From: Octopus bimaculoides | Taxonomy: Eukaryota | Length of the DNA stretch: 50,788 nucleotides | Assembly: GCF_001194135.2 (NCBI RefSeq) | Contig: NC_069000.1 | Span: 9,955,056-10,005,843, forward strand | Direction: 5' to 3' | Shown here: in pieces, positions 1,347 through 34,460 of the stretch | How positions within the stretch are numbered: position 1 is the stretch's first letter | Layout of the letters: each line of letters begins with the position of its first letter | The notes under the pieces: generated by a model | Databases searched by the model: none | What the model was told of the DNA's origin: nothing | Seen by the model: the letters and a program-made list of their open reading frames with translations, nothing else | Position numbers and translations under genes: made by a program

Positions 1347-2639
1347 TTACATGTTTTCAAGAGTTGTAGATCTCAATCTGATACACTGTACAAATAACAG
1401 AACAGATAGCAAGATACTACTGATAAAAATGGCGAGGGTAATCTGAGTATAATGTAAATTGAAGATAATGACAGCAGACAACAGATTAAGGCTCGTAGAC
1501 AAGAGACTGTAGTTGATAGTGCTATTCGGAAAAACTAATCTTCGCTTCCAAATCGGGGAAAAAATGCAGAAGATTATGGACGAGTTGAATAATATAATCG
1601 TGCTCAGAATAACACTCCAATAATCAGATATATTTGGATATTTGCGAACCATCGTCAACAGATATGTAAAGCTGCAGGATAAATTGACTGAACTCAACAC
1701 CAGACAACCAATTATAAACAGCCAGTGTATATCAGAAGACTTGGTCGTGTCACGTTGATTTTGATGTTGCCGAAATCGTCCAAGTGCGGTCATTTCTTCG
1801 TTTTCCTCTTTGCTAGAAGTAGAAGAAAGTGACAAACGATGTGTCGTCCTTGATTCTGCTGTGGTTGGTGTCGGAACCATTATCGAACTGTCTACAGAAC
1901 TATTGCCATCTGTTTCTTCCATTTCTTTCGAACTAGCCATTAATTTTTTCAAGGTATAGCACTCTCTTTTCAAATCAGCCATTAATTTTTCGAAGGTATG
2001 GCTTTCTCCTTCCGAATCCTCCGTTGCTGATTCGCATACATCGTCGTCTAAAAGGCTCTTTTCTTCTGAATCCGCCGTTGCTAATTCGCATACATCGTCG
2101 TCTAAAAGGCTCTTTTCTTCCGAATCCGCCGTTGCTAATTCGCATACATCGTCATCTAAAAGGCTCTTTTCTTCCGAATCCGCCGTTGCTAATTCGCATA
2201 CATCGTCGTCTAAAAGGCTCTTTTCTTCCGAATCCGCCGTTGCTAATTCGCATACATCGTCGTCTAAAAGGCTCTTTTCTTCCGAATCCGCCANNNNNNN
2301 NNNNNNNNNNNNNNNNNNNNNNNNNNNNNNNNNNNNNNNNNNNNNNNNNNNNNNNNNNNNNNNNNNNNNNNNNNNNNNNNNNNNNNNNNNNNNNGCTAAT
2401 TCGCATACATCGTCGTCTAAAAGGCTCTTTTCTTCCGAATCCGCCGTTGCTAATTCGCATACATCGTCGTCTAAAAGGCTCTTTTCTTCCGAATCCGCCG
2501 TTGCTAATTCGCATACATCGTCGTCTAAAAGGCTCTTTTCTTCCGAATCCGCCATTAATGCTTCGTGTGTATCGTTCTGTTCTTCCCAATACGCTGTCAT
2601 TTCTTCGGACGTGTCGTTCTTTTGCTGGTTTGATGCCAT
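1347..2639 (-). CDS. Orphan 4-TM family paralogue 1, with a 54-bp repeat expansion in the N-tail
   Basis: MASNQQKND start. The C-terminal ~125 aa have four hydrophobic segments that align with the seven other paralogues (W..LVLS..SCS; IIFC.F.P..KR; LLSA.IIF.L; ..LENM*). A 101-N gap (2294-2394) makes the true length and frame across the repeats uncertain. Confidence 0.85.
   Translation of the reverse strand: MASNQQKNDTSEEMTAYWEEQNDTHEALMADSEEKSLLDDDVCELATADSEEKSLLDDDVCELATADSEEKSLLDDDVCELXXXXXXXXXXXXXXXXXXXXXXXXXXXXXXXXXXXADSEEKSLLDDDVCELATADSEEKSLLDDDVCELATADSEEKSLLDDDVCELATADSEEKSLLDDDVCELATADSEEKSLLDDDVCESATEDSEGESHTFEKLMADLKRECYTLKKLMASSKEMEETDGNSSVDSSIMVPTPTTAESRTTHRLSLSSTSSKEENEEMTALGRFRQHQNQRDTTKSSDIHWLFIIGCLVLSSVNLSCSFTYLLTMVRKYPNISDYWSVILSTIILFNSSIIFCIFSPIWKRRLVFPNSTINYSLLSTSLNLLSAVIIFNLHYTQITLAIFISSILLSVLLFVQCIRLRSTTLENM
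2021..2551 (-). repeat. 54-bp coding tandem repeat (ADSEEKSLLDDDVCELAT), 8 visible units
   Basis: Five units at 2021-2290 and three at 2395-2551, separated by an N gap. Confidence 0.95.
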
Positions 2640-2689
2640 CTTACACGGAAAATGTTTCTCTGTTCAATTTTAGCAGTTTTGTATTTATT

Positions 2690-2880
2690 CTGTAAGAAAC
2701 AATAGAAATGAAGCAAATCTTTGTTCTGACTTTAGAAACTGACCTTAAATAAACTATTCCAAAATTTCAACGTCCGTCTTTTTTTTTTCTTTTATTCAAT
2801 CTCATTGTTTTGCATGGAGTGCATTCCCATCAACGACGCGGTTTCAATTCTTAGTTGAAGTTATCAAACTTTCATTTCAA
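2690..2880 (-). promoter_or_regulatory. Family-conserved upstream block (AAGTTTGATAACTTCAACTAAGAATTGAAACCG) plus putative 54-nt 5'UTR intron (2743-2690)
   Basis: The same block is upstream of all 8 paralogues. Donor AAG|GTCAGT and acceptor TTTCTTACAG| on the minus strand. Confidence 0.6.
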
Positions 2881-3062
2881 GATATCGGTTGAATTGTATG
2901 AACAATACTTTTTTTCAGTTTCCCTTTCCTATAGACATCTTAGAGACAAAAAATCAATATTATAAATGTGTTGATATTTTCAGAGTAAGAGTGTAAACTT
3001 GTGACAAGCTGCAAACACTTCCCTGTCTTAATTCTTGTTTAAGAATATTACACTCCAGGTCT

Positions 3063-6314: not shown

Positions 6315-6920
6315 TTACAGGGTTTGATGAGCTCTAAAATTTGATATCAAACTCGGTATACACAACAGAAGCAAAAGTAAGAAACTACTGATAATAATGG
6401 CAGCCATAATCCAATCATAATATAAACCGAAACCAATCGTAGCGGACAACAGAATAGATATGGTGGATAGGAGACAGTGGACGAGGCTGTGATTTGGGAA
6501 ATATGCTTTTCGTTTCGAAAACGGAAAGATGATACAGAAGATTGTCAACGAGTTGGCGGCTGTAAACACGTCTATAATAATACTCCAAAATTCTGATGTA
6601 TCTGAAAAATTGCGAACTTGTTGCAATAGATCGATAAGGCCGCAAGATAAAATAATCACCGACAACACCAGGTAGAGGAGTATACAAAACCAGTGTATAC
6701 TATAATAGTTAGTAATGTGCCGCTGCGTCTGAGGCTGATCGCCGTGTTCTTGTTGCAGACATTCTCCAGACTCGTTCATTTCTTCGTTTTCTTCGCTGAT
6801 AGATGATAGACGACGTGTCGGCCATAACTCAGTGGAATTTCGTCGCGAATTGCTCGTACTTGGAGCATCATTCGAGTTCTCCACAGGACTATCTCCATCA
6901 ATTCTTTCAGAGTTCTCCAT
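6315..6920 (-). CDS. Orphan 4-TM family paralogue 2 (201 aa)
   Basis: Intact ATG-to-stop ORF: MENSERIDGDSP, PTRRLSSISEENEEM, four hydrophobic segments, ends SNFRAHQTL. Confidence 0.9.
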   Translation of the reverse strand: MENSERIDGDSPVENSNDAPSTSNSRRNSTELWPTRRLSSISEENEEMNESGECLQQEHGDQPQTQRHITNYYSIHWFCILLYLVLSVIILSCGLIDLLQQVRNFSDTSEFWSIIIDVFTAANSLTIFCIIFPFSKRKAYFPNHSLVHCLLSTISILLSATIGFGLYYDWIMAAIIISSFLLLLLLCIPSLISNFRAHQTL

Positions 6921-8912
6921 TCTTTCTAGAGCTGTAATTTTCTTTCGCTGATTCGAAATAGTTTCCTCCGTTTAAACTATTAAGTGTTGACCATGTTTTT
7001 GTTTCTTTATTCTCTGAAAACAATAGAAATTCGAAAAATCATTGACTCTAAAAAGCGACCTCGAAATGAATTATTCCATAATTTCAACATCTGTCTTTTT
7101 TTTTTTTTTTCCTTTAGTCAATAGGCATTTCTTGCTTGCATATCATTCTAATCCACGAAGCGGTTTCAATTCTTAGTTGACATTATCAAACTTCACTTAC
7201 ACTTCAAGATAGTGGAAATGTATAAACAGAGAAGGAATAGTTTCCACAAGGAAGCTGTGCATTATCTCCCTAGAAGACAAATGAACCAAACTATAGGACT
7301 TTATTCAGGAAAATTGAGGTGGCAGCCTTTACGCCCCACCTATAAATTTTGGCTGCATCTACTAGAAATATGTTACTCACTTTTGTTAAAAAGCCGTCGC
7401 CTGGTGATGGCTTCGGAAATTTTTTTAGAAAGAGCCCTCTACAATGTACGGCAAGGCAACTAGTATCTATCTAGGGCTAGGCAGATTGGTGGAGGTCGAA
7501 GTCCTATTTGTGACTGGGGTCCTCGTACTGCAGTACTCAGGGGTCGCCTGTCGCTGTGAAGACGCTGCTTTCTTTCGCACTTATTTGAGAAAATGGACAG
7601 AGAAGCTGCCAACACGAGGGATCCACCAGAACTGGCTCTTTGGTGGATACTGGCCAGCATCGAGTTGGTGAACTAGGCGTTGTAACTAGTGTTGGACTAC
7701 ATCAATGTTCATTCTCTGAATAAAACCTAATCATTTCCAAAAGACTCCAAAGCTCATCTCCGTGTCAAATTGGGTGGAGTTGTGGGTAACTGTAGAGGGC
7801 AAAAGACTGATATGTTATTCGTGTGGAACAACTAACCACCTGATAATATTCTGCCCTCACAACTAAAACAGGAAATAAGAAAAGGGAGTCACAGTATCAT
7901 CTCTGCAACGACAACAGCATGCAGTAACAAAGGCAGAAGCAACAACAATAGCAAGGGTAAAAACCGAAGCAACATGTCTAACCTTTCTACGATGTGTCGC
8001 ATGAAGTAGATGTTCGATTATCGTGGAGAGACCGGTCTGTATGGCGCACGTCTACGCTTTCTCGACCACGCTGTCGACAACGTATACCAAACTTTTCACT
8101 AGCATGTTAATTAAAATCTTAAACTTTACTTTTATCAGGCCGGAAATTATCGATTACATTCCCTTCGTCCGTATCTTTGCTCAACAGTGCTTTTACTTCA
8201 TGGCATATTGAACTGTGAATCGTCTGTTCTTCAGCTAGTTGCAAGTATTTCTTTATTAGCCACTGGGGCCCAGACATAGAAGGGACGGCACAAGGACAGA
8301 CAACACAACTTGGGGACATAAAAAGTCAGATGAATGAGATGAATTATAATTTAGAAGGTAAAAAAAAGAGGAAATAAATTAAAAAAAAAAAAACGGGGAA
8401 AAAAAAGATGCGAAAGGAAAACAAACTTTCATAAGTTGTATAAATTAACAGTAAAACGGTCCTGCTTGAGAAGTGGGGCTCAATCCAGCCATTTCATTAT
8501 CATCGATTTTATTATACATTTTTTTATTTTCATTCATTTTATATTTTTGTCCTCCACCGTAATGTCCTGTCTGTCCTTGTGCTGTCCCCTCTGTGTAAGA
8601 ACCTGAGTGCTTAAATAAAGAAATACTGAGTCATGAAACATTGGCATTAGATGCCCAAGGGGTATTTGATAACATCCACTATGAATTGAAACCGTATCGC
8701 GGATTACAATGATATGCATGCAAGAAATTTAGATTGAATAAAGAAAATAAAAAAAAAAACGAAAATAAAACGTTGGAATAGTTTATTTAACGTGACATTT
8801 AAAAAAAATCAGAACAAATATTTCTGTAACATCTATTGTTTCTTAGACTATAAATACCAAACATGATCCAGTTAAAAAAAAAAAAAGAGTACACCTGAGA
8901 AGAAAACGAAAT

Positions 8913-12994: not shown

Positions 12995-13438
12995 AAAAAA
13001 ACCAAGTGAAATGTTTTCAGTCACGAATTGAAACCAGGAGGTGTTTTAAGCATGCCACGTCTTTATGGCTTTTCTCTACACCTCTCAAGACATTTATAAT
13101 ATTGATTCTTTGCGATTAAATCACATATTTTTTTTAAGGAAGGGAAATTGAGAGGATGTTAATATTCATACAATTTAACCGACATCTTGCAGTGAAAGTG
13201 AAGTTGATGATGTCAACTAAGAATTGAAACCGGGTCGTAGATGAGAATTTACTGCATGCAAAACAACGTGATTGATTGAAAGAAAAGAAAAAGGCGGATG
13301 TTGATATCATGGAATAGTTCATTTAAGGTCACTTTCTAAAATGAGAACAAAGATTTGCTTAATTCCATAGTTTCTTACAGAATAAATTCAAAACATGGTC
13401 AACTGTTTCGGAGGGAGAACGGAAACTTTTCATGGAAG

Positions 13439-14041
13439 ATGGCTTCAAATCGGCAAAATGACAATATATACGAAGAACTAATGACTTATTCGTTAGCATT
13501 GAATGACAGAATAAATAGCAATAGTTCTGTGAATAATTTAAGACTTGCTCGAACTACACGCTCTCCGATAGTAACCACTGCAAGGCATCGTTTGTCACTT
13601 TCTTCCACTGCCAACAGCGAGAGAAATGCGAGCATTTCCGCGTTTGGACGATCTCGGCAGCATTCAAACCAGCGTCACCTGACCAGGTATTCTGAAAGAA
13701 ACTGGCTGTTTATACTTTGCTGCCTAGTGTTGAGTTCGGTCAGTTTATCCTGCAGCTTTACATATATGTTGATACTGGTTCGCAAATATCCAAATACATC
13801 AGATTATTGGAGTGTCATTCTGAACACAATTATATTATTCAACTCGTCGATAATCTTCTGCGTTTTTTTCCCGATTTCGAAGCGAAGACTAGTTTCCCCA
13901 AATAACATTATCGTCTACAGTCTCTTATGTACGATGTTGAATCTGTTTTCTGCTCTAATTCTCTTCAATTTACAACATACTCCGATTACACTCGCTATTC
14001 TTATCAGTAGTATCGTACTTTTTGCTCTATTGTTTTCATAG
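13439..14041 (+). CDS. Orphan 4-TM family paralogue 4 (200 aa; premature TAG removes a 12-aa tail)
   Basis: Start assigned to ATG 13439 (MASNRQND) by homology to paralogue 1. After the TAG the frame continues SIGLRFTALENL* to 14080. Confidence 0.8.
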   Translation: MASNRQNDNIYEELMTYSLALNDRINSNSSVNNLRLARTTRSPIVTTARHRLSLSSTANSERNASISAFGRSRQHSNQRHLTRYSERNWLFILCCLVLSSVSLSCSFTYMLILVRKYPNTSDYWSVILNTIILFNSSIIFCVFFPISKRRLVSPNNIIVYSLLCTMLNLFSALILFNLQHTPITLAILISSIVLFALLFS

Positions 14042-15349: not shown

Positions 15350-15941
15350 TCGTAAATACAAGACCTGGTCAATTTCCGACGAAGCAAATTTTATGTTATT
15401 TCGCTTAAAATCTGCAAAGGAATAATTTTCTTAGAAATAATGTACGGTTCTGAAAGAACTTATGAAAAGAGTTCCGTGAAGTAGTAAACAATAATACAAG
15501 TTGTTGTAACTCTGAAAATTTTATTTCTGGCTATTTTGTTAGGAGTACGCCATCTTTTCTTGGTAAGAGATCTTAAATCAATGATCGGAGCTATTTTGCG
15601 AATGCAAACATCGATCCTCCATCCCTTTCCCCATTCAGTGCCGGTTCTATCCCGTTACATATGGGTAAAATATGAAGTGTCAAGCATCAGAGGTTATGAG
15701 GCAACTGAGCTCCGTTAAACCTGTGGTTCTTGAGAAGGCAACCTTTGATATATCGCGAGGGGGAATCCTCGGGACGATAAGCGACCATCTTGGAAACCAG
15801 ACACCTGACTGTGTTCTTTCTGTCGTACGGCTGCCAGGGCACCTAAAATAGACCGACTACACTCACACATAGGGACCATGCAGGCATGCTTACTCTCGCT
15901 TAAGATTCTCACATATTGGTGTTTCAGGGAGGGAAGGTTCC

Positions 15942-16036
15942 CAACAACTTGATCAATAACACCGATGTCGACTGGAGGACCTACGATATATGCCTTGGGA
16001 TTGGGGTCAATTTTTGTAGTTTTTGCAAATCTGTAA
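15942..16036 (+). pseudogene. 3' remnant of the 4-TM family (R2)
   Basis: Ends ...ALGLGSIFVVFANL* (aatctgtaa). Shares caacaa.ttgatcaataacacc.atgtcgactgga and the 3' flank with R1. Confidence 0.5.
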
Positions 16037-16690
16037 CCAAGTTTTATATTCGATTATTCCAGTTATAAATTTTTAATAAAGCTCAACGTTTGATATTTTG
16101 TTATCTAAAAATAAAAGAAAATTTCTAAATTCGAATAAAATATCTTAAATACTCTAGCTACACTAATCACCGGTTAAACCAGTGCTGGATTAACCATTAA
16201 GCAAAATAAGCATGTGCTTAGGGCGTGAAGTGAAGGAGGGGGCACCACAGAAATGGTAAATGGTTTACGGCACAAAAGAAATCACTTTCAACTTGCTAAA
16301 ATAATATTCGGGATTCCTTTACCTCTGCTAAGTATAGCTGCAGGTGTGTTACCTAAGATTAATTCTGAAGATCTGATCAAAGACTCTGCAATTCAAAAAA
16401 GTAGGGGGAAACTTTTCATATAAATAAAGTGGAAGTATACAAAAATAAACATTTTCCCTCCTACTGTTTTGTTTCGTTTTGAGAAATAAAAATTCATTTT
16501 TATGGCTTGTTTATATTTTGAATTGCATAATCTTTTATGGGGGGCGAAAGCATGAAAGGCAAAGTCGATCTCCGCGAAATTTGAACTCGGAATGTGAAAA
16601 CGGGCGAAATATCTGTAAACATTTTCCCCTGCGTGCTAACGATTCAGCCAGCCGCCGCCGCCGCCTTCTTCTTCTTCTTCTTCTTCTTCT

Positions 16691-17131: not shown

Positions 17132-17685
17132 GAAGAGAATACGAAGCAGTAACAAAAGCTAAGTCGGTGATCATACAGCTTGGAACCTACGATAGTAGGT
17201 TCACGTACAGGTGGTATCAAAAGGTTCTCAGACTAGCTATGTTTAATAAAAATAACTTATTTAGCTAAGTTTTAACATAATCTCCTTCGAAATAATCTCC
17301 TTGCGCAACAATACACCGGTCCTATCGTTCCTGCTACACTTGGAATCCGGTCCGGAAGTCGTTTTCCGGAAGTCGATTACATAGACCTCAGTACTCAACT
17401 GATACTTATTTTTTAGATTCTGAAAGGATGAAAGGTATAGTCAACCTCGGCGGAATCTGAACTCAGAACGTAATAACAGACGAAATGCAGCTAAGCATTT
17501 CGCCCGGTGTGCTAACGATATTGCTTGTTCCCCGCCTAATTCATTACTGTAATATTACCAAAAAATTACGAGTATTTACAAAGCATAAAAAAGTCTCCGA
17601 CCGTGTAATCACGGTTTTTAGCTCGTCCTGGTTATATATAAGTTTAGGTACAAATATATTTTAAAGCAATTAGAATATTTATACA

Positions 17686-17950: not shown

Positions 17951-18976
17951 ATAAGATTTTAACCAAGATGCGAATGAAAATGTTTCTACTTTTCGTCGGT
18001 AGCGCATTCGGGAAAGTGCAAATGGGTACGATACCGACCCCGTCTATCCAAGATAACCGAACCTCGACTTTATGCTATACACTGTAGGGGTGGTTAGTAG
18101 TAAACCTGGATTTGTGTAAATCAAATAAACTTGGATCAATTTTGATAGCCTGCGCCATTGCTTCTTGTAGGCTGTCTTCTAGGAAAACAGTTACCGTCCT
18201 CTCTTCAACGGCATTTACTCGGTGGTCAAATCAAATCTATCGGAACCGTTTAAAATCAAGTGTTTGGTTCAAAGATGTCTTCTCTCAGCTTTTCTGTACA
18301 AAATGACTCTCTCTCGAACCACTAATGCAGACATTGGAGCTGTTGGAGGGCACCTCGTTCGAACGGGAAATCGAAAGCGCCGACTCGACATATGCAGACT
18401 GTCATCTTTCTGGAGTTTGATACCATGAAAATCGAGAGGTGGGATCATATTGTACTGTCCCCTCTGTGTTCGTCCTTCATGGATAGTAATAAAATCATTC
18501 GCGAAAAATCATTCGATTACATCGACACTAGTTTTTTTTTTTTTTGACTTTCTCAAATCAATAAAAAAATCACAATACCAAACCAATAGCGAGTTAAACA
18601 GTAAAATGGAGTATATCACTGGTGATAAACAATATCAATATGAGCGACAAGTAATGTTCATATATTTCGAATAATATTTTGAAGCACAAATTAAATTTGA
18701 TAATGTCAACTCTAGAATTGAAACCGCACGTGGATTAGAAATATCTGCAAAGTATAATTGACTTGGAGGGAAAAAAAACCTGAAATTGAAATGATGGAAT
18801 AGTTTATTTAAGTGATTTTTTTAAAAACTCAACTCAAGGTATTTTAATAATTTCTATTGTTTCCTAAGACAACCAAACATGGTGAATTGGTTATAAATAT
18901 TAGAGTAGGGGGAGAACTTCTTTTATTGTATCAGTTAGCTTAGATTCTTAAAGAGAAGATTACGTCTCGAGAAAGA

Positions 18977-19699
18977 ATGGCGGATTCGAAAAGAAGTAAT
19001 GAAGATAATCCCAATGGTTATGGAAAAAATGATAATGGAAGAAATAGTGATGGAAAAAATGGTAATGGAAAAAATGGTAATGGAAGAATTGGTGATGAAA
19101 AAAATGGTGATGGAGGAAATGGTGATGGGAAAAACGATGAAAGCAGAAGCAGTTTTCTACAAACCCCGAATATTTCGGGGCCGACACGTCGTCTGCCACT
19201 CGTTTCTTATGTCAGCGATGGAAAAAATATAGAAATGACCACGTTAGGAGCATCTCAGAAACCTGAACTCTGCTCTAAACAACAGCAAACCCAGCAGAAC
19301 ACTACTTCTGATCATCGTATACAATTGCTCAATACAGTAGCCTACATGGTGCTGTCATTTGTCGGTTTATTCTGCAGCAGTATAGATGTAGCGGAAAGAA
19401 TTCGCAATTTTTCAGCTATGCCAAACTATTGGTATATTGTTTTAGACGCGGTTATAGCCATCAACTCGTTGATAATCTTTTGTGTTGTCTTTCATCTTTC
19501 AAACAAAAGTGCAAGTTACTCAGACCGCATGTTCTTCGTCGGTCTCTTTTGTTCCTTGCTTAATCTGGTGTCTGCTAGCGTTATGTACCATCTACATGAA
19601 GAATGGATAGCTGTAGTTGTTCTTATCAGTGCTACGATGCTTTTATTTCTGCTGTATATACCATGGTTGATGTCGAATTTTGCAGATAAAAATAGCTAG
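18977..19699 (+). CDS. Orphan 4-TM family paralogue 5 (240 aa), with GKNG(N/D) repeats
   Basis: PTRRLPLVS..KNIEMTTL and four TM segments. Conserved upstream block at 18693-18735. 15-bp repeat x8 at 19021-19140. Confidence 0.9.
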   Translation: MADSKRSNEDNPNGYGKNDNGRNSDGKNGNGKNGNGRIGDEKNGDGGNGDGKNDESRSSFLQTPNISGPTRRLPLVSYVSDGKNIEMTTLGASQKPELCSKQQQTQQNTTSDHRIQLLNTVAYMVLSFVGLFCSSIDVAERIRNFSAMPNYWYIVLDAVIAINSLIIFCVVFHLSNKSASYSDRMFFVGLFCSLLNLVSASVMYHLHEEWIAVVVLISATMLLFLLYIPWLMSNFADKNS

Positions 19700-20900
19700 A
19701 CACTGCGAAAAACGTGAGTATACTGTCGGAGAAAATTCTGTTTTAATATCTATTTAACTAGATTTAATTAGTGAATTCTACTCTCAGAACTTTGCAGAAA
19801 GCGTTTAACATTTTATATGATTTTTGTACATGTGGGACGGAATACCAAAATGCATTCCACAAGACCAGATTCACACAATGAATGTACTAAAATCTACCAA
19901 CGGCTACAATAATTGCAAAGACTTCTTTGCTGTAAACACCAAAATTTCAGCTTCCCTCCTGTAGTATCTCTTGCGATTCCCAGTCCTCTACATGAGCTTG
20001 TATCCCTATGTGGGGATTGACACAGTCCATACACTGTTGCTTGATCTTTCTCTCCTCGAAACCCTAAGCATTACCAAACCGTAATCATCTTATCAGATCA
20101 TCCGGCCACTGCCTTATAACCCCACCCCTCCCAACACAAACCTACTACAGTTCTCTCCAGCACCTGATCTACTGTATTACAATATATAATCATAGGAAAA
20201 TATTTGTATAAAACCTCATCGATTTCCTATCGTTTTTACCGACGCAAGCTTCGGCTAGTTACTTCATACATGCTATATAGGAGCGAGCGGAAGATAATAT
20301 ACTACGTGTTACCGATTACTAAAGCCTTCACTTTTTTTTTTAAACTAGTTATAATACTGACTCCTTATGACATCTAACGTCCATTTCTATTTTCCAGGGA
20401 TTACTAAGAGGACATAATCTTCTTAAATTTCCAATGCTATTACAATCTAAAGAATGACTTTAAGTATTAATACCATGTCAAAATGATCGGTCTATAATAA
20501 TCGTAAATGACTAAAACATGAACCATTTCTTTCTTTAAACCGTTTTCTCAATTGAAAACGGTAAATTATCTTTTACTTTCCATTGTTTATTAGGTAATGC
20601 AGTGGAGAAAAAGAATACAATGAGTTGAAGGTACTTTTGGTGGAGGAAATTGTTCATGTTAGTTGGCTTCATATCGGCACAGGTGACTTCGTCAGAAATA
20701 TGGATTGTTATACTGGAACATAGAGAAACTTGTGGCTTCAAAAGTATCTATATTTGAAATTTACTACGAACATCGAATAATTTGAGGTTAAAACCGTCGC
20801 TGCATATAGATATCCTCCATCAAAGACCATCTAGATATCCACACCACCTCAAATATCACAACCAACTTCACACTAACAATTAGAACTTGATTTTTTTTTC

Positions 20901-21084
20901 TCTATCATTTTCCCGTTTTTCAAACGATGGTCAGTTTTTCTCAACTCGCCTTCTCGTCCACTGTATTCTATGTGATTTATTTAAACTGTTGTCTGCTACT
21001 TTTGACTTCGGTTTACAATATAACGTTTGTATTTTATGTGTTCCGACGTTGATGTCGAATATTTACAAGTTTCAAAATCTGTAA
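20901..21084 (+). pseudogene. Frameshifted, internally deleted 3' remnant of the 4-TM family (R3)
   Basis: SIIFPFFKRWSVF, then a frameshift into STRLLVHCILCDLFKLLSATFDFGLQY..LCVPTLMSNIYKFQNL*. Most of TM4 is deleted. Confidence 0.8.
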
Positions 21085-22004
21085 CTAACTTCAACTCTTT
21101 AGATTCCTTTATTCTGGTTTTATTTTCTGCCACCTGGCAGAACCGTTAACCTGCCGGGCAAAATGCTTAGCGCCGTTTCGTCCATCTTTACATTGTGAGT
21201 TGAAATTCCGCTAAGTTCGACTTTGCCTTTCCTCTTTCGGAGGTCGATAAAATAAGAGTTGAATGGGTTATCAGCTTCGCCCTCTCTCGAAATTGCGAAA
21301 ATTTGAAATACCCTGGCTACACTTTTACCTGTAAAACCTTCAGATTTTTTCTTTTCTAAATTTGTCATTTCTTAAACCTATTGCAATTTTATACTCTAAG
21401 CTTAACTGCAAATTTTGTAACTATTTGAATAAAGAATACTTGAAATGTTCTCGTTGGTTGTTGTTATAATGCATTTTTTTTTTAATTTTTAAATCTCTGT
21501 CGAAACTTTCACTTGACACTGCAATTCAAAGATCAAATAATTTTTCTTGTAAAAAAAACAAAAAAAAACACATATGAACAAACCTAGGCTTCGAAATCTT
21601 TAATTTTAGAAACGGCTGTAATCCCGACATCAACAGCATGATATAGAAGAAGCACCTCAATTCAAGATAACTCTAATGGCTTCTAAGCAGCAACAGTTCA
21701 TAACTAAAAAAAAAACAACCTGCAATAAGTTATAGAAACATTCGGGATCATTGGTGTCGGAATGTTATACAATAGACGGATTAAAAATTAATATAATTAC
21801 GTTACTTGCTTAAGTTACTGGAGTGTGGCCATTCTGGGGTATCGCATGGAAGCATTTCGTTGGATAAATCGACCACGGTACATATTTTCATATCTGGTAA
21901 TTGATCTATCGTTGTGCTTTGTCGATCGTTGCAATCATCTGTCCGAGTAGATCGTAATTCTTGTTTGTGCGTTGTTCGAAAGGTTTGGCGTAAGTTGTAA
22001 TATT

Positions 22005-22320: not shown

Positions 22321-23682
22321 TCAACCACGAAAAAGGAAACAAACATTTAGGCATTCAATATATATTTAAGGCAAACGTGATAAACAACACGTTACATGCG
22401 ATAAACACATTACAATTTTTAACTGAAAGATTTGAAAGAATTAGATGAAAGTTCTCCGGTAATTTACTTTCATGTAAATAAATGTTTATGTTAATTTAGA
22501 AAAATTGCCAGCAAAATTTTATAAAATGACAATGTTTCAAAAGATGTACATGGTTTATATGTTATATACGAAATTAAGAGTAATCAAAATATGCTTAAAA
22601 AACAAACATTTTAGCATGCAATAAGCAACACATTACAAAATATTTTTTAAATTGAAACGAATTAGAAATGCATTCAATTAATTTATCAAACAAATCACAG
22701 TTTTCATAGAGATATGAATCTATCACAGAACGGCGAGTGCCACAACGTCGTTTATTACCTCACTTCACAGAGCCCCACATACTCTACAAGTGTGTGTACT
22801 ATATTTCGGGTTAACAAACCCAACGCTGTGGTTCACCGTTCTGTGCTCAAAATTGTAGCCATCAATTTCAGGAATGTGAGAGTATACGCCCTCCACAAAT
22901 CGCTGAAAATTGTGGTTCCTGGAAGAATCGAGTAACGTATGCATTCTTCCAGTGTGTCACGATTCCGACATCGCACTGCATACAGAAAACCCTGTCTGGT
23001 CTCGCGATACACTCCTCCGAAAACCCACTGCTCAGGTGGGACCCTTCCTCGGTTGTACTTACGTTCTGTTGCTAGTTGCAGTAGATGCCTGGCAAGACGC
23101 CGGCCAACACTACTGGCAAATATGCATAAAGCTCGTAGGGAAGGCCTCCAAATCAGGCGATCCGCACCGCGTACAACCAGTTATCAGATCCCGGACCTCT
23201 GCATCTTCTACCGTGGGCCGCGGTAAGCTGTCGAGGTATGCTGTGAGGTCTTCTACCATCTACAGTTCGACCGTCCATCCAGAACAATTCAGTAAAGTGT
23301 TGCTGCAAAACTATACACATCTATTTAAAAACGAGTAACTTCCTGGTCCATGAAACATCAACATTAGAAGCCAAAGTGAAGTTTGATGACTTCGACTAAG
23401 AATTGAAACTGTGTCATGGATTACAATGATCTGCAGGCAAGAAATTTTGATTGACTGAACAAAAATGAAAAGACTGATGTTGAAACGCTGGAACAGTTTA
23501 TTTAAGGTCATTATTTTAAAATCAAAACAGTATTTTTTTCAATTTCTATTGTTTTTCAGACAATAAGTACAAAACATGATCAAATATTAATATTTCACAG
23601 AGAAGAAAAATGTTAGTGCAAGTTTGCTTCAAATCAGCAAAAGAATAATAAGTTCCAAGAAAGAACGGAGGACTCGAAAAGA

Positions 23683-26092: not shown

Positions 26093-26971
26093 ATGTCTCT
26101 TTTTCTCCTCAGATCTGAAAAAATTAAGATCAATAGAGCAACAATAAGAGACTTTCTCTTCACCGACGATGCGGCACTTGTTGCTCACAGTGAATTAAAT
26201 CTACAAATAATGATGGACCACCTTTCATCAGCATACAAGGCCTTCAGTCTGGTCATCAGTGTAAAGAAGACAATCATTCTCACTCAGGAGGGCGCAGTGA
26301 AAGGCCATATCAGGCTTGATGACAAAGAGCTTGAGACAGTGGACAGGTTCTGCTATCTAGGGTCTACCGTTTCCTCTTCTACTTCACTTGATGATGAGAT
26401 TAACGTCAGGATAGGGAAGGCAGCAACGACTTTCGGAAGGCTGACAAAACGAGTTTGGAAGAACAAGAGATTAGACATCAAGACAAAGGTCAGGATTTAT
26501 GAAGCATGTGTTCTCAGCACACTCCTCTATGGATCTGAAACATGCACCTTGTACAGCAGACAGGAAAGGTGCCTCGGTATTTTCCACGTCAGATGCCTCT
26601 GCAAGATCTCAGTCCTAACATGGCGCGACAAGGTCACGAATGTTGAAGTGGTGGCCCAGGGGAATCTTCAAAGCATGACAGCTATCTTGTGTATGAGAAA
26701 ACTGAGGTGGCTGGGGCATGTTAGGAGAATGGATGACCATCGAATCCCGAAGCAACTGATCTATGGAGAACTGGCCCAGGGCAAGAGACCAAGAGGAAGA
26801 CCAAAACTGAGGTATAAGGACACTTGCAAAACTAGTTTGTCCAAGTGTGAGGTGGATGTCAGCACCTGGGAAGAGAGGGCTGAGGACAGAAAAACATGGA
26901 GGACTGTGGTGAAGGAACTGCTTCGCAGTGGAGACGCTGAAAGATTTGGTGGAGACAGTGTCAATTGGTGA
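26093..26971 (+). mobile_element. RTE-clade LINE, 5'-truncated reverse transcriptase C-terminal part
   Basis: LFTDDAAL, FCYLGS, RIGKAATTFGRL, LLYGSET, LRWLGHVRRMDDHRIPKQLIYGEL and RPRGRPKLRYKD are typical RTE RT/C-terminal motifs. Confidence 0.9.
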
Positions 26972-28329
26972 ACTGGTATTGAAAATGTGGCCAAAAAGGC
27001 CACATTAGAGCACACTGCCCTCTGCAAAAGCGAAAAACAGAAGAAATGCCGGCAAAGAAGCAAGAGAAGGAAAAAGAAAAAGAGGTGGAAAGAGAAGAAG
27101 AATGGAAAGTGGTTGATGGAAAAAGGAAGAAGTTGAAAAAATGTAATGTGGGATCCCAATCCTTGCCCACCCCACCCATACCCTCTGAGGCCCATCCTCT
27201 CCCTACATTCACTGAAACCACCCATTCCCCTCCTAAACAAGCTGAAAAGAAAAACGAATCGCAGACACAACAAAGCACAAAAACTTTTCCTCCCCATCAA
27301 GTAAACTATGCGTGCATAATGACGGACGAGGAAAATACGGAGCTAATCCGGATGGTAACGGACTGGAAGATAGCAAAGTTTGTGAGTACATATGGTTACC
27401 AGGGTAAAATAGGGTGGAATATGTGCATGCTGTTTTCAGAAGGACAGATGGAACAAGTTAAGAAATACATAAAAAAGATTTGAAATGCTGGAAAATAAAT
27501 ACAGACATTAAGGATATACCAGATAACATACCATGTGATGAACTATTAGCAAAATATGGTACAGACGTGATAGTGGGGCTAGAAGAAATAAAGGGACTCG
27601 AAAGGAAGTAAGTGCTGTTGCTTGCTGTGGGGCGAGTGGCACATTTCCATATTTTCATTACTCATTTCATATCATCATATTTATAGTTTTATTTAGATTT
27701 TAATTTTAATTTTCTGTTATATGTCCCCACAAGTGTGTTTGTTTGTCCCCTCTTCGTTGGCCCCTTGTGGGTAATAAAAGAAAGAAATATATAAATTGAT
27801 AATTTCTCAGACGGTGATCTGGTACGTTTGTTTAAATCGTAGGATGATGTTTTCTTTTTCTTTTTTTCTTTCTGGTGTTTATGTTTTTAGTTCAGATCTA
27901 ACCGCGGTGAGAATACGAACATCTTATTTTTGGTAAGTAAAATTTTAGGAGCATGACACCAAAAGGTAGGCTGGTCCTACTGATTTAATGAATAGCAGTG
28001 TAGTTGACATAGAACTAATTTATTTTAAGAAAAACAAACAGAAAGGATATGTCGTTCCAAGTACATCAAATAAATTTTTTTGACTTAACTAAGAATTGAA
28101 ACCGTGTCGTAGTTTCGAATGATAAACGAGAGAGAGAGAAAGAGAGGTGTTGGAATAGTTCATTTAAGACAGTTTGAAAACCAGAACAAGATAAGTAGAC
28201 TTTTTTATTTTGTTAATTTCATTGTTTTTTTTAGATAATAAAGAGAAAGCTTGGTCAGTTGTTCTGTTGGAGGAAAATTTTGATATCAGTTTGGTTTCAT
28301 ATCAGTTGGAGATTATATCCCTAGAAAGA

Positions 28330-29241
28330 ATGGAGGACTCGGAAAGAACTGATGGAGACGATTCTGGGGAAAATTTAAGAACAGATGGAGATAGCCCTGA
28401 AGATAATTTGAGAACGGATGGATATATCCCTGAAGATAATTTGAGAACGGATGGATATATCCCTGAAAATAATTTGAGAACGGATGGAGATAGCCCTGAA
28501 GATAATTTGAGAACGGATGGAGATAGCCCTGAAGATAATTTGAGAACGGATGGAGATAGCCCTGAAGATAATTTGAGAACGGATGGAGATAGCCCTGAAG
28601 ATAATTTGAGAACGGATGGAGATAGCCCTGAAGATAATTTGAGAACTAGTGAAGATAGTATGCGGGTTAATTTGTATAATGCTCCAAGTATGAACAATTT
28701 GCAACGAGCCGCGAATATTTTGTGGTCAAGACCCTCACCATTAATCATTTCCAACAATCTCAGCAACGAAGAAAGCATAGAAATGACTGCACGAAGAGCA
28801 TCTCAGCAACCCCAGCAATACGGCCGACATCGGCTCGCTACTAATTATTATAAGATACACTGGCTCTATCTACTCGTCTGTCTGGCGTTATGCGTACTCA
28901 GTTTCTCATGCAGCACAATACATCTGCTGAAGGTAGCTTACCACTTTCCAAAGACAGTAACTGAATACATGAGTGCTTTTTTAGACCTGGTTATAGATGG
29001 CAGTGCGTTGATAATCTTTTGTATAGTTTTCCCATTTTCGAAACGGGGAGCTGTTTTACGCAGCCGCCGTCTCATCCAGTGTCTCTTATGTGCCTTATGT
29101 AAACTCATGTCTGCTACAGTTATCTTTGGTTTACTACATGATTGGATTATGCTAGCTGTTCTCGTCAACAGTATCACACTTTTGACTTTGTTGTGTGTAC
29201 TGGGCTTGCGGATGAATTTCTCATCTCTTCAAAATCGATAA
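28330..29241 (+). CDS. Orphan 4-TM family paralogue 7 (303 aa), with a 33-bp repeat expansion
   Basis: Start assigned to ATG 28330 (MEDSERTDGD) by homology. EDNLRTDGDSP repeats, NEESIEM, four TM segments, ends NFSSLQNR. Confidence 0.9.
   Translation: MEDSERTDGDDSGENLRTDGDSPEDNLRTDGYIPEDNLRTDGYIPENNLRTDGDSPEDNLRTDGDSPEDNLRTDGDSPEDNLRTDGDSPEDNLRTDGDSPEDNLRTSEDSMRVNLYNAPSMNNLQRAANILWSRPSPLIISNNLSNEESIEMTARRASQQPQQYGRHRLATNYYKIHWLYLLVCLALCVLSFSCSTIHLLKVAYHFPKTVTEYMSAFLDLVIDGSALIIFCIVFPFSKRGAVLRSRRLIQCLLCALCKLMSATVIFGLLHDWIMLAVLVNSITLLTLLCVLGLRMNFSSLQNR
28399..28629 (+). repeat. 33-bp coding tandem repeat (EDNLRTDGDSP), 7 full units plus partial flanking units
   Basis: gaagataatttgagaacggatggagatagccct; two units read GYIP. 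Confidence 0.95.
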
Positions 29242-31119: not shown

Positions 31120-32604
31120 TATTTTGCCTAATAAAATACAAATAGTGTTCTCGTAATTTGCTCTGGAAAAAAAATGGAGTAATTCCTATTTTTTTTTTTT
31201 CCTCTTGCGAAAACAGAATATCCAAATTCAATAAAGACGGACACAAAATTCCTCCTTGAGTCAATTAAACCAGCTACATAGAAATGGTTTTAAATTTTAG
31301 CACAGGGTCAGCATTCATAGGGNNNNNNNNNNNNNNNNNNNNNNNNNNNNNNNNNNNNNNNNNNNNNNNNNNNNNNNNNNNNNNNNNNNNNNNNNNNNNN
31401 NNNNNNNNNNNNNNNNNNNNNNNNNNNNNNNNNNNNNNNNNNNNNNNNNNNNNNNNNNNNNNNNNNNNNNNNNNNNNNNNNNNNNNNNNNNNNNNNNNNN
31501 NNNNNNNNNNNNNNNNNNNNNNNNNNNNNNNNNNNNNNNNNNNNNNNNNNNNNNNNNNNNNNNNNNNNNNNNNNNNNNNNNNNNNNNNNNNNNNNNNNNN
31601 NNNNNNNNNNNNNNNNNNNNNNNNNNNNNNNNNNNNNNNNNNNNNNNNNNNNNNNNNNNNNNNNNNNNNNNNNNNNNNNNNNNNNNNNNNNNNNNNNNNN
31701 NNNNNNNNNNNNNNNNNNNNNNNNNNNNNNNNNNNNNNNNNNNNNNNNNNNNNNNNNNNNNNNNNNNNNNNNNNNNNNNNNNNNNNNNNNNNNNNNNNNN
31801 NNNNNNNNNNNNNNNNNNNNNNNNNNNNNNNNNNNNNNNNNNNNNNNNNNNNNNNNNNNNNNNNNNNNNNNNNNNNNNNNNNNNNNNNNNNNGAAATGAG
31901 ACAGAAACAATAAAATTTATCTTACAAAAAGCAGGATACGTTCATTTAGCTCTCAAATGTCTACAATTCCTACAATACAACTGTTTTTTTTTTCTTAACT
32001 CTTTTATAATATATATGAAATTCAACAAAGGTAAATTTGTCGCTGACAGGGTTTGAACTCAGTTGTGTCTTGTTTTGTCTATCAACTGTGTATATGTTTT
32101 GCATTTAAATTTTTAATCGCATCTCAATGTTGAATCATACGTTTTCATCTGACCTCAGAATCAAATTGTGTTGGCCCCCCTCTATGTTGGCTCCTAGTGG
32201 TCAACAAAAAATGAGAGAGGAACGAATTAAATGTTGCGACACAAGAAGCTCCCGATAATTTTATAACCTTTCTAGATGGGTGTTCGAACTTTAGAAATTC
32301 CTCCCTACATACAATATCAAATAATGCAGAAAGAGGAACTCCAAAAGTCATGAAAACCTTACGTGCTCCCCTTGTGTGCTTCGTCGGGTAACAGCGTGTT
32401 AAACTTTGAAACGGGTTAAAACTGACGTCTTGGTATCTTTCGTATTAAACAGTGTAAATATGGACGCAGATATGACTGTGTGGTTAGGAAGTTTGCTTTG
32501 CAACTATGCGATTCCAAGTTCAATCCCTCTGTGCGACACTTTGAATGAATGTCTTCTACCATATCATCAGGTCGAGTAAATCCTTTATGAGTAGAATATG
32601 GTAA

Positions 32605-32825
32605 ATGACTATTGCGTAAAGGCTTAACGGAACGACTACTCTTGTTTTTTGGTTGGTGGACTTAATCGTTTTCCTCATTTAACGCCATCACTTGGCCAAC
32701 CTGCGGAGTCTACCCTGGAATAAACATTCAAACCAAAGACCCCGTCTTGGAATAACTTCCTTCCTTCGTGTTACCAATGTCCTGCTGTAAAGGATCTTGA
32801 AGGTTACCCTATCACTAAGCCATAT
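32605..32825 (+). pseudogene. Disrupted third copy (C) of the 64-aa small ORF
   Basis: MTIA*RLNGTTTLVFWLVDLIVFLI*RHH...FLRVTNV aligns codon for codon with copies A and B over the first ~28 codons. It has in-frame stops and later frameshifts, and is preceded by the same SINE head (32465-32605). Confidence 0.65.
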
Positions 32826-33842
32826 ATATAGATTTTTAAAAAAACACGAAAAAAATATCATGAAGTGAGATTTTTTTCCAGTCACGAATTGAAACTGTGG
32901 TATGACGTCAGTGTCTGGGGAGGCTGACCGGAAGGGGAAAAAGGGCAGAGGGAGCCTCGATCGGGATTCGTGCCCTTTTTCGAACGGGGCTGCGGTCAGT
33001 ACAAGACGTGTTAAGCGACGGTCCAGGTTTGGGAAGGTTTGGGAGAAGCAGCTGCTATTCCTGGTGTACTTTGGGTCGGGGCAAGCTTCAAGGATCGGAT
33101 ACCGCAAGACGGACTCGCAGTCGAGGAAAGGAAAACTGAGGGAAGGCGATTACATCTACTCGTACGCACACGCCACAGAAACCAAGAAATGATTGTAGCT
33201 AGTCAGAAGTTTACGTTTTAATGTGCAGCTCTCAACACATTTATAAAGTTGATTCTTGATGATTAGATACAAATTTATATGACTCCTTACCGAGTCATAT
33301 AAACTAGACGGGACACCGGTCCGTCGCAGGGTTACTTATTTGCTAGCTGAGTGGACAAGAACAAAGTGAAATGAAATATTTTGCTTAAGAACACAACGCA
33401 TTACCTAGCCCAGGAATCGAAACTGCAATCTTATGATCATGGCTACTAACACCTTAACAACTGAGTTACAGGCCTCCGCCACTGGATACAAACCGAAAGG
33501 TAGCATTCATACATTTCTAACAACATTAAAAACCTAAGTGAAGTTTGATGACCTAGACTAAGAATTGAAATTGTGTCGTAGATTCGAATGCAAAAATACG
33601 TATAGTGATTAACCAAAGAAAATGGAAGGGAAAAAATGGAAAGCAAAGCGCGCGCAAGTCGAAATGGTGGACTAATTCATTTAAGGTGAGTTTTAAAATT
33701 TAAAAGAAAAATAGGGAAGTAGTTTTTCTTTCTTTTTAATTTCCATTTCCGGAAGAACAAATACAAAACAAAACCGGCTGTTAATATTTCAAACGGAGGA
33801 AAGCTCTCATATCATTCGGTTTCAAAACGGCTAAAGAAGATT

Positions 33843-34460
33843 ATGTCTCGAGAAAGAATGGACGGTGATTCTAGAACTGATGGAAATACAAATACTTTGG
33901 AGAGTAATCCAAGTATGAGCAATTTCCTGCGAACATCGAACGATTCCTGGCCAACATCACGTCCACCACCTGCTTCCAGCAGTCATAACAACGAAGAAAA
34001 CATAGAAATGATAGAGCTAGGAGAATCTCGGCAGCATCCGAACCAACAACGCATTATTCCTAGTCATTATGAGCCACACTGGCTCTATCTACTCCTCTAT
34101 CTGGCGTTATCTATGTTCAATTTCTGCAGCAGCATTATACATCTGTTGAAATTATCTCACGAACTTTCATATACTATAGCAGAGTATTTAATCATCCCTC
34201 TAGACTTGGCTATATCGGCCGGCTCGTTGATAATCTTCTGCATCGTTTTCCCGTTTTCGAAACGAAAGGCGGCTTTCCCAAATCGCACTCTCGTCCACTG
34301 TCTCATATGCAGTTCGTTTAAGCTGGCGGCTGCAACCATTATCTTCGGTTTACAACATGACTGGCTTATGTTGGCAATTCTTATCAATTGTGTCGCGCTC
34401 TTTAGCCTGCTGTGTGCACCGAGAATGATGTCGAATTTTAAAGTTGTTCAAAATCTATAA
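33843..34460 (+). CDS. Orphan 4-TM family paralogue 8 (205 aa)
   Basis: MSRERMDGDS, NNEENIEMIEL, four TM segments, ends SNFKVVQNL. Upstream block at 33536-33583. Confidence 0.9.
   Translation: MSRERMDGDSRTDGNTNTLESNPSMSNFLRTSNDSWPTSRPPPASSSHNNEENIEMIELGESRQHPNQQRIIPSHYEPHWLYLLLYLALSMFNFCSSIIHLLKLSHELSYTIAEYLIIPLDLAISAGSLIIFCIVFPFSKRKAAFPNRTLVHCLICSSFKLAAATIIFGLQHDWLMLAILINCVALFSLLCAPRMMSNFKVVQNL

Follow-up and report, generated by a model that had tools for sequence, protein, structure and literature searches.

A single tandem array in the genome of Octopus bimaculoides encodes a family of small four-helix membrane proteins that has so far been found only in octopods. We consider the account given here, taken as a whole, probable on balance; the part of it that casts the members as phospho-regulated adaptors or auxiliary subunits is tentative and somewhat less likely than not. 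The genomic and evolutionary evidence is set out first, followed by the structure and possible function of the proteins.

Results

A single array of intronless genes

The window analysed here is a stretch of 50,788 nucleotides of contig NC_069000.1 (positions 9,955,056 to 10,005,843, forward strand). It contains eight homologous, intronless ORFs of 199 to about 430 aa, all of which were found where a sequence-only reading had marked them (Table 1). They can be aligned over a block of ~130 aa with four hydrophobic segments, with 26–62% identity to g1; the reading had described this block at ~125 aa, and it is evident in the alignment of all eight. Matches to the family HMM have E=1e-38 to 6e-50 and span HMM positions 1–130, with g4 covering 1–117. 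As none of 100 shuffles of bases 1–35000 yielded an ORF of at least 199 aa (longest 180 aa), compared with nine observed, the eight ORFs are not the product of chance. Rfam and tRNA scans found no RNA genes in the window, and the assembly gaps at 10047–10668 and 31323–31892 are intergenic, overlapping no family ORF or conserved flank.

The eight window genes form the right-hand part of an array of 14. The complete array spans 58 kb and comprises 14 intact genes, one truncated copy and at least eight relics, all confined to G000:C20:9,931,592-9,989,512 with no other locus in the 2.34-Gb genome; the same single cluster was recovered with the divergent Argonauta proteins as queries. Its suspected continuation to the left was confirmed, with six further intact genes, the truncated copy and many relics lying beyond the window. 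Each unit is self-contained, measures ~1.1–1.9 kb and is spaced ~4.5–5.5 kb from the next. Three remnants had been proposed in the window: one retains coding similarity, and the other two are flank-only relics, the first of which has lost all coding similarity between its two flank matches. A mobile element was considered and ruled out: the copies are confined to one cluster, and homology in the flanks tapers off without common termini.

Table 1 Family genes, upstream modules and relics in the window.
Feature	Position	Strand	Evidence and remarks
g1, family gene	1347..2639	-	Four-helix domain encoded at 1362-1736
Upstream module of g1, promoter/5'UTR-like	2601..2878	-	nhmmer E=1e-64; motif order
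g2, family gene, 201 aa	6315..6920	-	
Upstream module of g2	6918..7208	-	E=1e-61
Upstream module of g3	8649..8873	+	E=1e-48
g3, family gene, 199 aa	8913..9512	+	Orthologue is P0005 of another octopod
Upstream module of g4	13186..13458	+	E=6e-67
g4, family gene, 200 aa	13439..14041	+	Short C-tail ending ALLFS
Relic copy	15353..16092	+	Weak upstream-module match 15353-15439 (E=1e-3); 3'-block match 16001-16092 (E=5e-6)
Relic, lone 3'-flank block; minus-strand copy otherwise lost	17538..17681	-	E=4e-10
Upstream module of g5	18679..18979	+	E=1e-52
g5, family gene, 240 aa	18977..19699	+	G/N/K-rich repeat tail
Pseudogene remnant	20539..21107	+	Partial upstream module 20539-20680; TM2-TM4 coding remnant 20890-21081 (E=1e-9); 3'-block start 21064-21107
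Upstream module of g6	23366..23665	+	E=2e-71
g6, family gene, 204 aa	23683..24297	+	
Upstream module of g7	28063..28332	+	E=4e-40
g7, family gene, 303 aa	28330..29241	+	Orthologue is O. sinensis XP_036366638.1
Upstream module of g8	33531..33860	+	E=3e-56
g8, family gene, 205 aa	33843..34460	+	Rightmost array member

Several genes call for comment. The N-tail of g1 repeats an acidic 18-aa unit (ADSEEKSLLDDDVCELAT; 54 nt) at least eight times, and an assembly gap of 101 Ns (2294–2394) breaks the repeat. Because the gap lies within the repeat, the length of g1 is 397 + 18n aa rather than firmly 430; the repeat register requires a true gap of 2 mod 54, which is 2 mod 3, as is 101, and the reading frame is therefore preserved at any copy number. 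The orthologue of g4 in another octopod, P0008, has the same short C-end, which therefore does not reflect a recent truncation. In g7 the 11-aa repeat DGDSPEDNLRT occurs 8.3 times (33-nt unit, 28372–28646). Translation of g8 probably starts at Met6 (33858), giving 200 aa, as in its orthologues, which are an intact unannotated ORF in O. sinensis (84% identical) and P0001 (67%).

Each gene carries its own flanking modules

The gene units share a fixed order: an upstream module of ~300 nt with six motifs in constant order, the intronless coding sequence, and a conserved 3' block of 150–250 nt in which an (A/G/T)ATAAA hexamer lies ~100 nt past the stop codon. All eight window genes have the upstream module (E=1e-40 to 2e-71), the 3' block and a coding sequence that is a single ORF. 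Between paralogues, the upstream module aligns as well as the sequence coding for the membrane domain, and flank homology is gone past -300 and +250. The g7 and g8 modules are 93% identical to those of O. sinensis, while dS is 0.15–0.25; the upstream modules thus evolve more slowly than synonymous sites.

Purifying selection on the membrane domain

Pooled dN/dS for the membrane domain was 0.45 (Fisher p=1.3e-9), clearly below 1, indicating purifying selection; the coding sequences are therefore not near neutrality throughout. The N-tail, with a pooled dN/dS of 0.81 (not significant), is near neutral apart from its motifs. A dN/dS above 1 for the g7 tail was not accepted as positive selection, as the repeats cannot be aligned reliably.

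These values bear on the possibility that the ORFs are mere leftovers, either untranscribed or without function, and that the "family" is an annotation-free duplication accident. Public protein sets include one of the 14 intact array ORFs (g5), a single orthologue is annotated in O. sinensis, and the relics, together with a frameshifted family copy in O. sinensis, point to ongoing decay. Against this, 14 ORFs of 197–430 aa have stayed open at 30–60% identity in a genome of 35% G+C, where no shuffled ORF was longer than 180 aa; two other Octopus-grade species retain intact orthologous ORFs, and Argonauta still has the family. With the constraint on the membrane domain (p=1e-9) and the slow evolution of the upstream modules, we regard this explanation as very improbable.

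Homologues found so far are all from octopods

Searches of 1.84 billion representative proteins returned octopod homologues only, from Octopus sinensis, another octopod sampled in SRA runs and Argonauta hians, the last of which also has tandem, intronless copies. One HMMER pass over predicted proteins found no squid or Nautilus homologues, and word-indexed protein searching contributed no more than P0001, g5 itself and a pair of Argonauta proteins. The expectation of a lineage-restricted family therefore holds, with a range narrower than the "cephalopod" first suggested: all sequences found are from Octopus and Argonauta. Logan contigs containing orthologues are genomic rather than cDNA, being collinear with the window far past the gene and having microsatellite ends.

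In the phylogenetic tree, Octopus species are linked by one-to-one orthologues and the Argonauta sequences fall mostly in separate deep clades. Along with the frameshifted O. sinensis copy and the many relics, this bears out the birth-and-death evolution proposed earlier, the family expanding and contracting through tandem duplication and decay.

A disordered tail and a compact four-helix bundle

AlphaFold2 predicts a compact, antiparallel up-down four-helix membrane bundle following a disordered N-terminal tail (pLDDT 84, pTM 0.74). The tail is mostly acidic, 70–300 aa long and often built of paralogue-specific tandem repeats. Within it lie a site of basophilic-kinase type, (P)xRR(L)S(L)xS, and the motif EENIEM, both of which are kept from Octopus to Argonauta, although the RRxS-type motif is short and some paralogues (g7, g8 and La) lack it or have it in degenerate form.

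The loops of the membrane domain measure ~12, ~11 and ~4 residues (mean 11.6 for loop 1), and the C-tail 12. Loop 2 averages 2.4 K+R against 0.4 D+E and the C-tail is net positive, with loops 1 and 3 net negative. Because loop 2 and the C-tail are basic, the N-terminus, loop 2 and the C-terminus are predicted by the positive-inside rule to be cytosolic, in agreement with the N-in/C-in arrangement put forward by the sequence-only reading. The KRK-type loop 2, HYD/HDW loop 3 and ENL/QNL end that it had picked out are all visible in the alignment. Further landmarks of the window ORFs are HW...SCS..H in TM1, (D/E)Y...LD...NS in TM2, the FPFSK(R/K) loop, C..C...N..SA in TM3, the H(Y)DW loop and ISS...LL in TM4. 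A possible internal duplication, in which the TM1-2 hairpin would correspond to the TM3-4 hairpin (EYW../DW.., NS/SS and FC.VFP/LLCVP by eye), was rejected on an hhalign probability of 1.5%.

The conserved face of each helix (C12-S16-S19-S23-H26; D49-I52-S56-F60; C81-C84-N88-A92; S110-S111-L114-L118) coincides with its polar/small face to within 3–38 degrees. Such a conserved polar face would suit a conduction path as well as helix packing.

Singly or as homo-oligomers, the proteins could provide a pathway for ions, protons or transition metals, in which an outer-face cluster (His26, Glu42, Tyr43, Asp49, His/Tyr100 and Asp101; alignment A4 numbering) would lead to a Ser/Asn-lined core and an inner-leaflet ring of cysteines (C12, C61, C81, C84 and C119), with the cytosolic RRxS tail as gate. 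Constraint is strongest in the membrane domain, where conserved polar, acidic, His and Cys residues sit on the conserved helix faces in successive layers along the membrane normal. Cys-lined four-helix copper storage proteins are among the fold matches, as generic bundles only (TM 0.60, E=1.6). Yet one tightly packed bundle of four helices offers little space for a pore, Ser/Ala/Cys faces are equally typical where helices simply pack together, and none of the candidate residues is invariant among 28 sequences (His26 20/28, Asp49 20/28, Cys84 22/28). Similarity to known channels or transporters was absent from Pfam, PDB sequence and PDB fold comparisons. We therefore treat a pathway as unlikely, though it ranks second among the readings.

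The sequence-only reading had guessed at a receptor, channel or immune/sensory role, and cell-surface chemosensory or immune receptors, with paralogue diversity reflecting ligand diversity, would fit a tandem birth-and-death array in which the proteins evolve fast and every gene has its own promoter, resembling chemoreceptor and immune receptor clusters. An N-x-S/T sequon is present in loop 1 in 36% of sequences. The outward surface is tiny, however, with loops of ~12 and 4 residues, and so speaks against a surface receptor of the classical kind. Most variation, including repeat expansion, occurs in the cytosolic tail rather than the outer loops, and conservation centres on cytosolic motifs and the helix core. 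A receptor role thus seems improbable.

Searches for relatives

Pfam comparison of 28 members and the window proteins gave scattered sub-threshold matches only, with no family common to the members; the MFS_1 model matched two of them below cut-off (best E=7.5e-5). No match at E≤1 was found in the 28 members for the CD20, MARVEL, tetraspanin or claudin models, and the tetraspanin model (PF00335) had none at E≤10 in the window proteins. A PDB sequence search with two family profiles found nothing below E=0.19. Foldseek searches of the PDB with two models returned generic four-helix bundles and GPCR fragments only (best E=0.2–0.26), and a search of the literature found no description of the family. 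The family thus stands as unrecognised, with the MARVEL/CMTM group included in the comparison. It also lacks, as had been noticed, the large EC2 with CCG of tetraspanins, the TM3-TM4 loop being four residues (Q/H-H/Y-D-W), and the W-GLW-C-C motif of claudins, which is absent from loop 1, with no match to PF00822 or PF13903.

That the family is a strongly diverged offshoot of some known tetraspan superfamily (MS4A/CD20-TMEM176, MARVEL/CMTM/synaptogyrin, claudin-like or similar), with a homology too remote for these searches, is a further possibility that we consider quite unlikely. It is encouraged by an MS4A-like plan of four TMs, N-in/C-in topology, an RRxS-type N-tail and tandem birth-and-death arrays, and by a low-ranking synaptogyrin match (8a6m) in the first Foldseek search (E=0.77, TM 0.36/0.43). 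The missing Pfam matches speak against it, as does an hhalign probability of 0.7% for the family profile against human CD20. The 50 best fold matches of the second, better model contain no PDB tetraspan, neither CD20 nor synaptogyrin. Loop 3, at just four residues, differs from the sizeable second outer loop of those families, and the genes are intronless.

Discussion

Our preferred reading is that the proteins are tetraspan adaptors or auxiliary subunits, a proposal based on architecture and the placement of conservation that we offer tentatively. The bundle would serve as a membrane anchor or interaction module, packing through the conserved small/polar face of each helix. The cytosolic tail, switched by phosphorylation and specific to each paralogue, may be shown to partners, as may the conserved basic loop (FPFSKRK..FPNR) and C-end (SNF..QNL). 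Such adaptors would tune or traffic another membrane protein, in the manner of FcεRIβ/MS4A, TARPs and phospholamban-type regulators, to which the likeness is one of working rather than ancestry. A conserved promoter on every gene could allow cell-type-specific or alternative use of paralogues.

Cephalopod novelties are often credited to lineage-specific gene families, few of which have been defined at the sequence level. The array described here is a clean case, with 14 or more membrane proteins of one octopod-restricted family maintained by selection. With one member annotated here and one in O. sinensis, the family has been missed by expression atlases and orthology tables. A more speculative idea, to which we give little weight, is that it forms a new phospho-regulated class, octopod-born or diverged past recognition, of small ion/metal pathways or dedicated auxiliary subunits, with at least 14 paralogues deployed in distinct cell types of octopod-specific tissue (suckers, skin, nervous system). 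If true, this would be a molecular novelty tied to octopod biology that annotations have overlooked. Another tetraspan adaptor would be a modest addition; a new conduction or regulatory module of octopod tissue would be of real interest. Experimental handles include a confident fold model, candidate regulatory sites (RRxS, EENIEM and the basic loop) and the promoter-like module of each gene.

Among known families, MS4A/CD20/FcεRIβ proteins (PF04103) are likewise small, with four TMs and both ends cytosolic (predicted for the octopod family), and share a cytosolic N-tail with a basophilic RRxS-type site: the N-tail of CD20 carries ...FRRMSSL..., and g3 has PTRRMSLLS. They too form tandem arrays under birth and death, and some MS4A members are signalling adaptors or chemoreceptors. 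The octopod family differs in showing no sequence or profile similarity and no fold match in the top 50, in a second outer loop of four residues against tens in MS4A, and in its intronless coding sequences and restricted range. MARVEL proteins (CMTM, synaptogyrin, physins and occludin; PF01284), which have roles in vesicle and membrane organisation, share the four-helix membrane domain, N-in/C-in topology and, in some cases, short loops, but none of the 28 members matches their Pfam model and the synaptogyrin fold match is non-significant. Tetraspanins and claudin/PMP22 proteins also have four TMs and cytosolic ends and form multigene families; the outer loops of ~12 and 4 residues in octopods hold neither a CCG-containing EC2 nor a W-GLW-C-C ECL1, and Pfam matches are lacking.

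Phospholamban (PLN; RRASTIEMPQQARQ) and related pump regulators have a cytosolic RRxS, followed by ..IEM.. and a Q-rich stretch before the membrane segment, a succession also seen in the octopod family (RRLSL..EENIEM..SRQHQNQ). PLN has one TM as opposed to four, and the likeness, being confined to a short motif, may be due to chance and serves as a lead only. In genomic organisation, although the octopod array is without shared constant exons, it resembles clustered protocadherins and chemoreceptor arrays in having one conserved upstream module per unit, with motifs in fixed order.

An array of fourteen genes

Re-reading the window reproduced exactly the coordinates that the sequence-only reading had given for all eight ORFs (g1 to g8, left to right), and its count of eight genes plus three remnants also holds. 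A family HMM run on the six-frame translation recovered the eight genes (E=1e-38 to 6e-50) and one coding remnant, and profiles of the conserved flanks added two relics in which coding similarity is gone. No ORF of at least 199 aa arose in 100 shuffles of bases 1-35000 (longest 180 aa), against nine observed. The proteins encoded by g1 to g8 share an alignable C-terminal block of ~130 aa with four hydrophobic segments, preceded by an N-terminal part of variable length and low complexity that is acidic for the most part; g2 to g8 are 26-62% identical to g1.

Family genes and remnants found in the window
Feature	Position	Strand	Basis
g1	1347-2639	-	ATG-to-stop ORF, standard code
g2	6315-6920	-	ATG-to-stop ORF, standard code
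g3	8913-9512	+	ATG-to-stop ORF, standard code
g4	13439-14041	+	ATG-to-stop ORF, standard code
g5	18977-19699	+	ATG-to-stop ORF, standard code
g6	23683-24297	+	ATG-to-stop ORF, standard code
g7	28330-29241	+	ATG-to-stop ORF, standard code
g8	33843-34460	+	ATG-to-stop ORF, standard code
Coding remnant	20890-21081		Family HMM on six-frame translation, E=1e-9
Relic, coding similarity gone	15353-16092	+	Conserved-flank profiles
Relic, coding similarity gone	17538-17681	-	Conserved-flank profiles

The window occupies G000:C20:9,955,056-10,005,843 of the 2.34-Gb octopus assembly. With g8 as query, matches across the whole genome were confined to C20:9,931,592-9,989,512, and the same single cluster alone was hit when two highly divergent Argonauta members served as queries. 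The earlier suggestion that the array might continue leftward proved correct: the 40 kb left of the window carry six further intact ORFs (197-266 aa), a copy truncated at its N-terminus (109-aa ORF) and several orphan flank modules. Because all these queries match this cluster alone, and with the six left-hand ORFs included, the whole family makes up a single array, with 14 intact genes in mixed orientations. Gene starts in the plus-strand run are spaced 4.5-5.5 kb apart.

An assembly gap (2294-2394) splits a 54-nt repeat in g1, coding for the 18-aa unit ADSEEKSLLDDDVCELAT, into stretches of 5.3 and 2.9 copies. The repeat register demands a missing length of 2 mod 54, which is 2 mod 3, like the 101 Ns; the frame would therefore be intact at any copy number, and the predicted length of g1 is 397 + 18n aa, 430 not being a firm figure. 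Gaps 10047-10668 and 31323-31892 fall between units, clear of any ORF and conserved flank. There are two in-frame ATGs in g8, Met1 and Met6 (33843-33860), and because both orthologues begin at the Met6 position (33858), the true protein is probably 200 aa.

A 292-aa ORF (26093-26971, +) lies between g6 and g7, accompanied by an antisense one (26761-27297, -). The 292-aa ORF has only a weak Pfam match, to DUF6451 (E=4e-5, below cut-off); by eye it resembles the C-terminal end of a reverse-transcriptase ORF from a retroelement, and it is probably an inserted LINE fragment. The 158-aa antisense ORF at 28302-28778 (-), whose SGLSPSVLKLS repeats are the reverse reading of g7's 33-nt repeat, is most likely not a gene. 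Two Q-, P- and H-rich open frames of 309 and 244 aa (46944-47873 and 48868-49602, both -) contain IKxE-type motifs and match no Pfam model; they probably belong, as exons, to a glutamine-rich nuclear protein, the array's right-hand neighbour. The left-hand neighbour is probably represented by a 263-aa open frame, TPR-like by eye, ~6.5 kb left of the leftmost family gene (G000:C20:9,924,265-9,925,053; 9210-9998, +, of the fetched piece L018, past whose edge it reaches). Several assembly gaps right of the array (window 38647-39034 and 43079-43811; 1-2500 of the piece L022) are bordered by (TATA/TATG)-type microsatellites that translate as YIYIYI, which suggests that these gaps are long simple repeats.

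A conserved promoter-like module

Every family CDS is a single exon. Between paralogues, nucleotide homology begins near -300 and is lost beyond about +150/250, and the upstream 300 nt align just as well as the coding sequence of the membrane domain. This block holds motifs of fixed order and spacing relative to the ATG: GAATTGAAACC (-210 to -283), TGCATGCAA, GATTGA, GGAATAGTTTATTTAAGG, TCTATTGTTTC and AATAAATA (-50 to -121), two of the six being TATA-like. An (A/G/T)ATAAA hexamer is conserved in position ~100 nt past the stop. For g7 and g8, the upstream 300 nt are 93% identical to O. sinensis, compared with a synonymous divergence of 0.15-0.25, and the module is therefore slower-evolving than silent sites. 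We infer a putative promoter plus 5′UTR, in which the TATTTAAG or AATAAATA box would be a candidate element with transcription starts downstream.

Two further likenesses were noted by eye only. The far end of the module (e.g. 13186-13458, 23366-23665) has the consensus TTTGATGAYGTCRACTA, similar to a CRE/ATF-type site (TGACGTCA), and the TCTATTGTTTC...ACAATAAATA pair recalls SOX-type sites by its inverted ATTGT/ACAAT cores.

Relatives and selection

Word-indexed protein searches returned almost no relatives. When 1.84 billion representatives were scanned exhaustively with HMMER, 21 proteins came up, with none outside Octopoda among the predicted proteins covered. Relatives comprise one O. sinensis RefSeq protein (‘uncharacterized LOC118766890’, the g7 orthologue), five clusters from octopod SRA runs SRR11869385-94 and fourteen Argonauta hians ‘hypothetical proteins’, many adjacent on one scaffold. 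The Argonauta locus has four same-strand genes, each drawn as an uninterrupted interval and separated by about 3-10 kb; all three complete genes read as single ORFs. At the O. sinensis locus (L027) the g7 and g8 orthologues are intact, the latter 84% identical, and one copy is frameshifted. In the tree, Octopus genes pair or triple 1:1 as orthologues across species and Argonauta sequences fall mostly in separate deep clades. This pattern is that of an old octopod family evolving by birth and death. The sequence-only reading of an unrecognised, lineage-specific, birth-and-death membrane family was right.

Pooled over five orthologue pairs, dN/dS was 0.45 for the membrane domain (Fisher p=1.3e-9; individual pairs 0.17-0.58), so on this measure, proposed earlier as a check, the domain is not near 1. 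The tail gave 0.81, no different from 1; a value of 3.4 for the g7 tail was disregarded, as repeats there are unalignable. Frames stay open in three Octopus-grade genomes and in Argonauta. The combination of dN/dS, open frames in several genomes and constrained promoter-like modules argues strongly that the genes are functional, and makes it highly improbable that they are functionless ORFs.

Annotation is sparse. Public protein sets hold g5 alone among the 14 intact genes, and the O. sinensis annotation includes the g7 orthologue only, leaving the g8 orthologue and the frameshifted copy (L027 19094-19696 and 5141-5760) unannotated alongside. The g7 orthologue XP_036366638.1 (366 aa) has one 11-aa repeat unit fewer than the continuous 377-aa genomic ORF (L027 10001-11134), and the missing 33 nt lack GT..AG ends. 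One possibility is that the model was fitted to transcript data, another that the number of repeats is polymorphic; as support for transcription, the difference is a weak hint at best. Logan contigs were rejected as transcript evidence, being genomic.

Structure and possible function

AlphaFold2, given a 28-sequence alignment, predicted the membrane domain as a confident up-down four-helix bundle (pLDDT 84, pTM 0.74; helices 3-32, 38-61, 73-96 and 100-130), and the full-length model showed disorder over about the first 75 residues. Loops 1, 2 and 3 and the C-tail average 11.6, 11.0, 4.0 and 11.8 residues, respectively. Loop 2 has 2.4 K+R versus 0.4 D+E, the C-tail is net positive, and loops 1 and 3 are net negative; under the positive-inside rule, this distribution predicts a cytosolic location for the N-tail, loop 2 and C-end.

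Several landmarks are kept from Octopus to Argonauta. The tail has the RRxS-type site (P)xRR(L)S(L)xS and the acidic motif EENIEM. TM1 opens with HW and has SCS..H at its outer end, where TM2 has (D/E)Y and LD. Loop 2 carries FPFSK(R/K) and FPNR, TM3 carries C..C...N..SA, H(Y)DW forms loop 3, TM4 has ISS, and the C-end has SNF...QNL. Conserved and polar/small faces coincide within 3-38 degrees on each helix. The conserved parts are the helix core, the C-end, two tail motifs and cytosolic loop 2; elsewhere the tail is variable and repeat-prone, with paralogue-specific repeats of 18 aa (g1), 11 aa (g7), G/N/K-rich (g5) and SERLED type (one left-hand member).

The membrane bundle is compact, with almost no outward-facing surface. 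We tentatively favour, at somewhat below an even chance, a tetraspan adaptor or auxiliary subunit, in which the bundle would serve for anchoring or interaction, and the cytosolic tail would be a paralogue-specific effector arm switched by phosphorylation. The conserved outer-face His/Asp/Glu cluster, Ser/Asn core and inner-leaflet Cys ring could instead line a small ion, proton or metal pathway, which we consider somewhat unlikely. A surface chemoreceptor or immune receptor is quite improbable given the tiny outer loops.

Comparison with known families

No Pfam model was common to family members, and a PDB sequence search with family profiles gave no match below E=0.19. Matches from Foldseek against the PDB were no more than GPCR fragments and soluble four-helix bundles of a generic kind (TM 0.66 for pectin methylesterase inhibitor), the best of them at E=0.26. 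Tetraspanin and claudin defining loops are absent, as had been noted from the sequence. An internal hairpin duplication was tested and rejected, and hhalign against CD20 gave a probability of 0.7%. The family is unclassified by these Pfam, PDB sequence, PDB Foldseek and hhalign comparisons; membership of a known tetraspan superfamily, as a divergent branch, is unlikely.

The family itself is undescribed and nearly unannotated, and its kind, small tetraspan membrane proteins encoded in tandem arrays, is already familiar. Octopod-specific tissue expression or ion conduction, if true, would raise its interest. The tail motifs offer two leads only: CD20 carries the similar-looking FRRMSSL, and phospholamban carries RRASTIEM.
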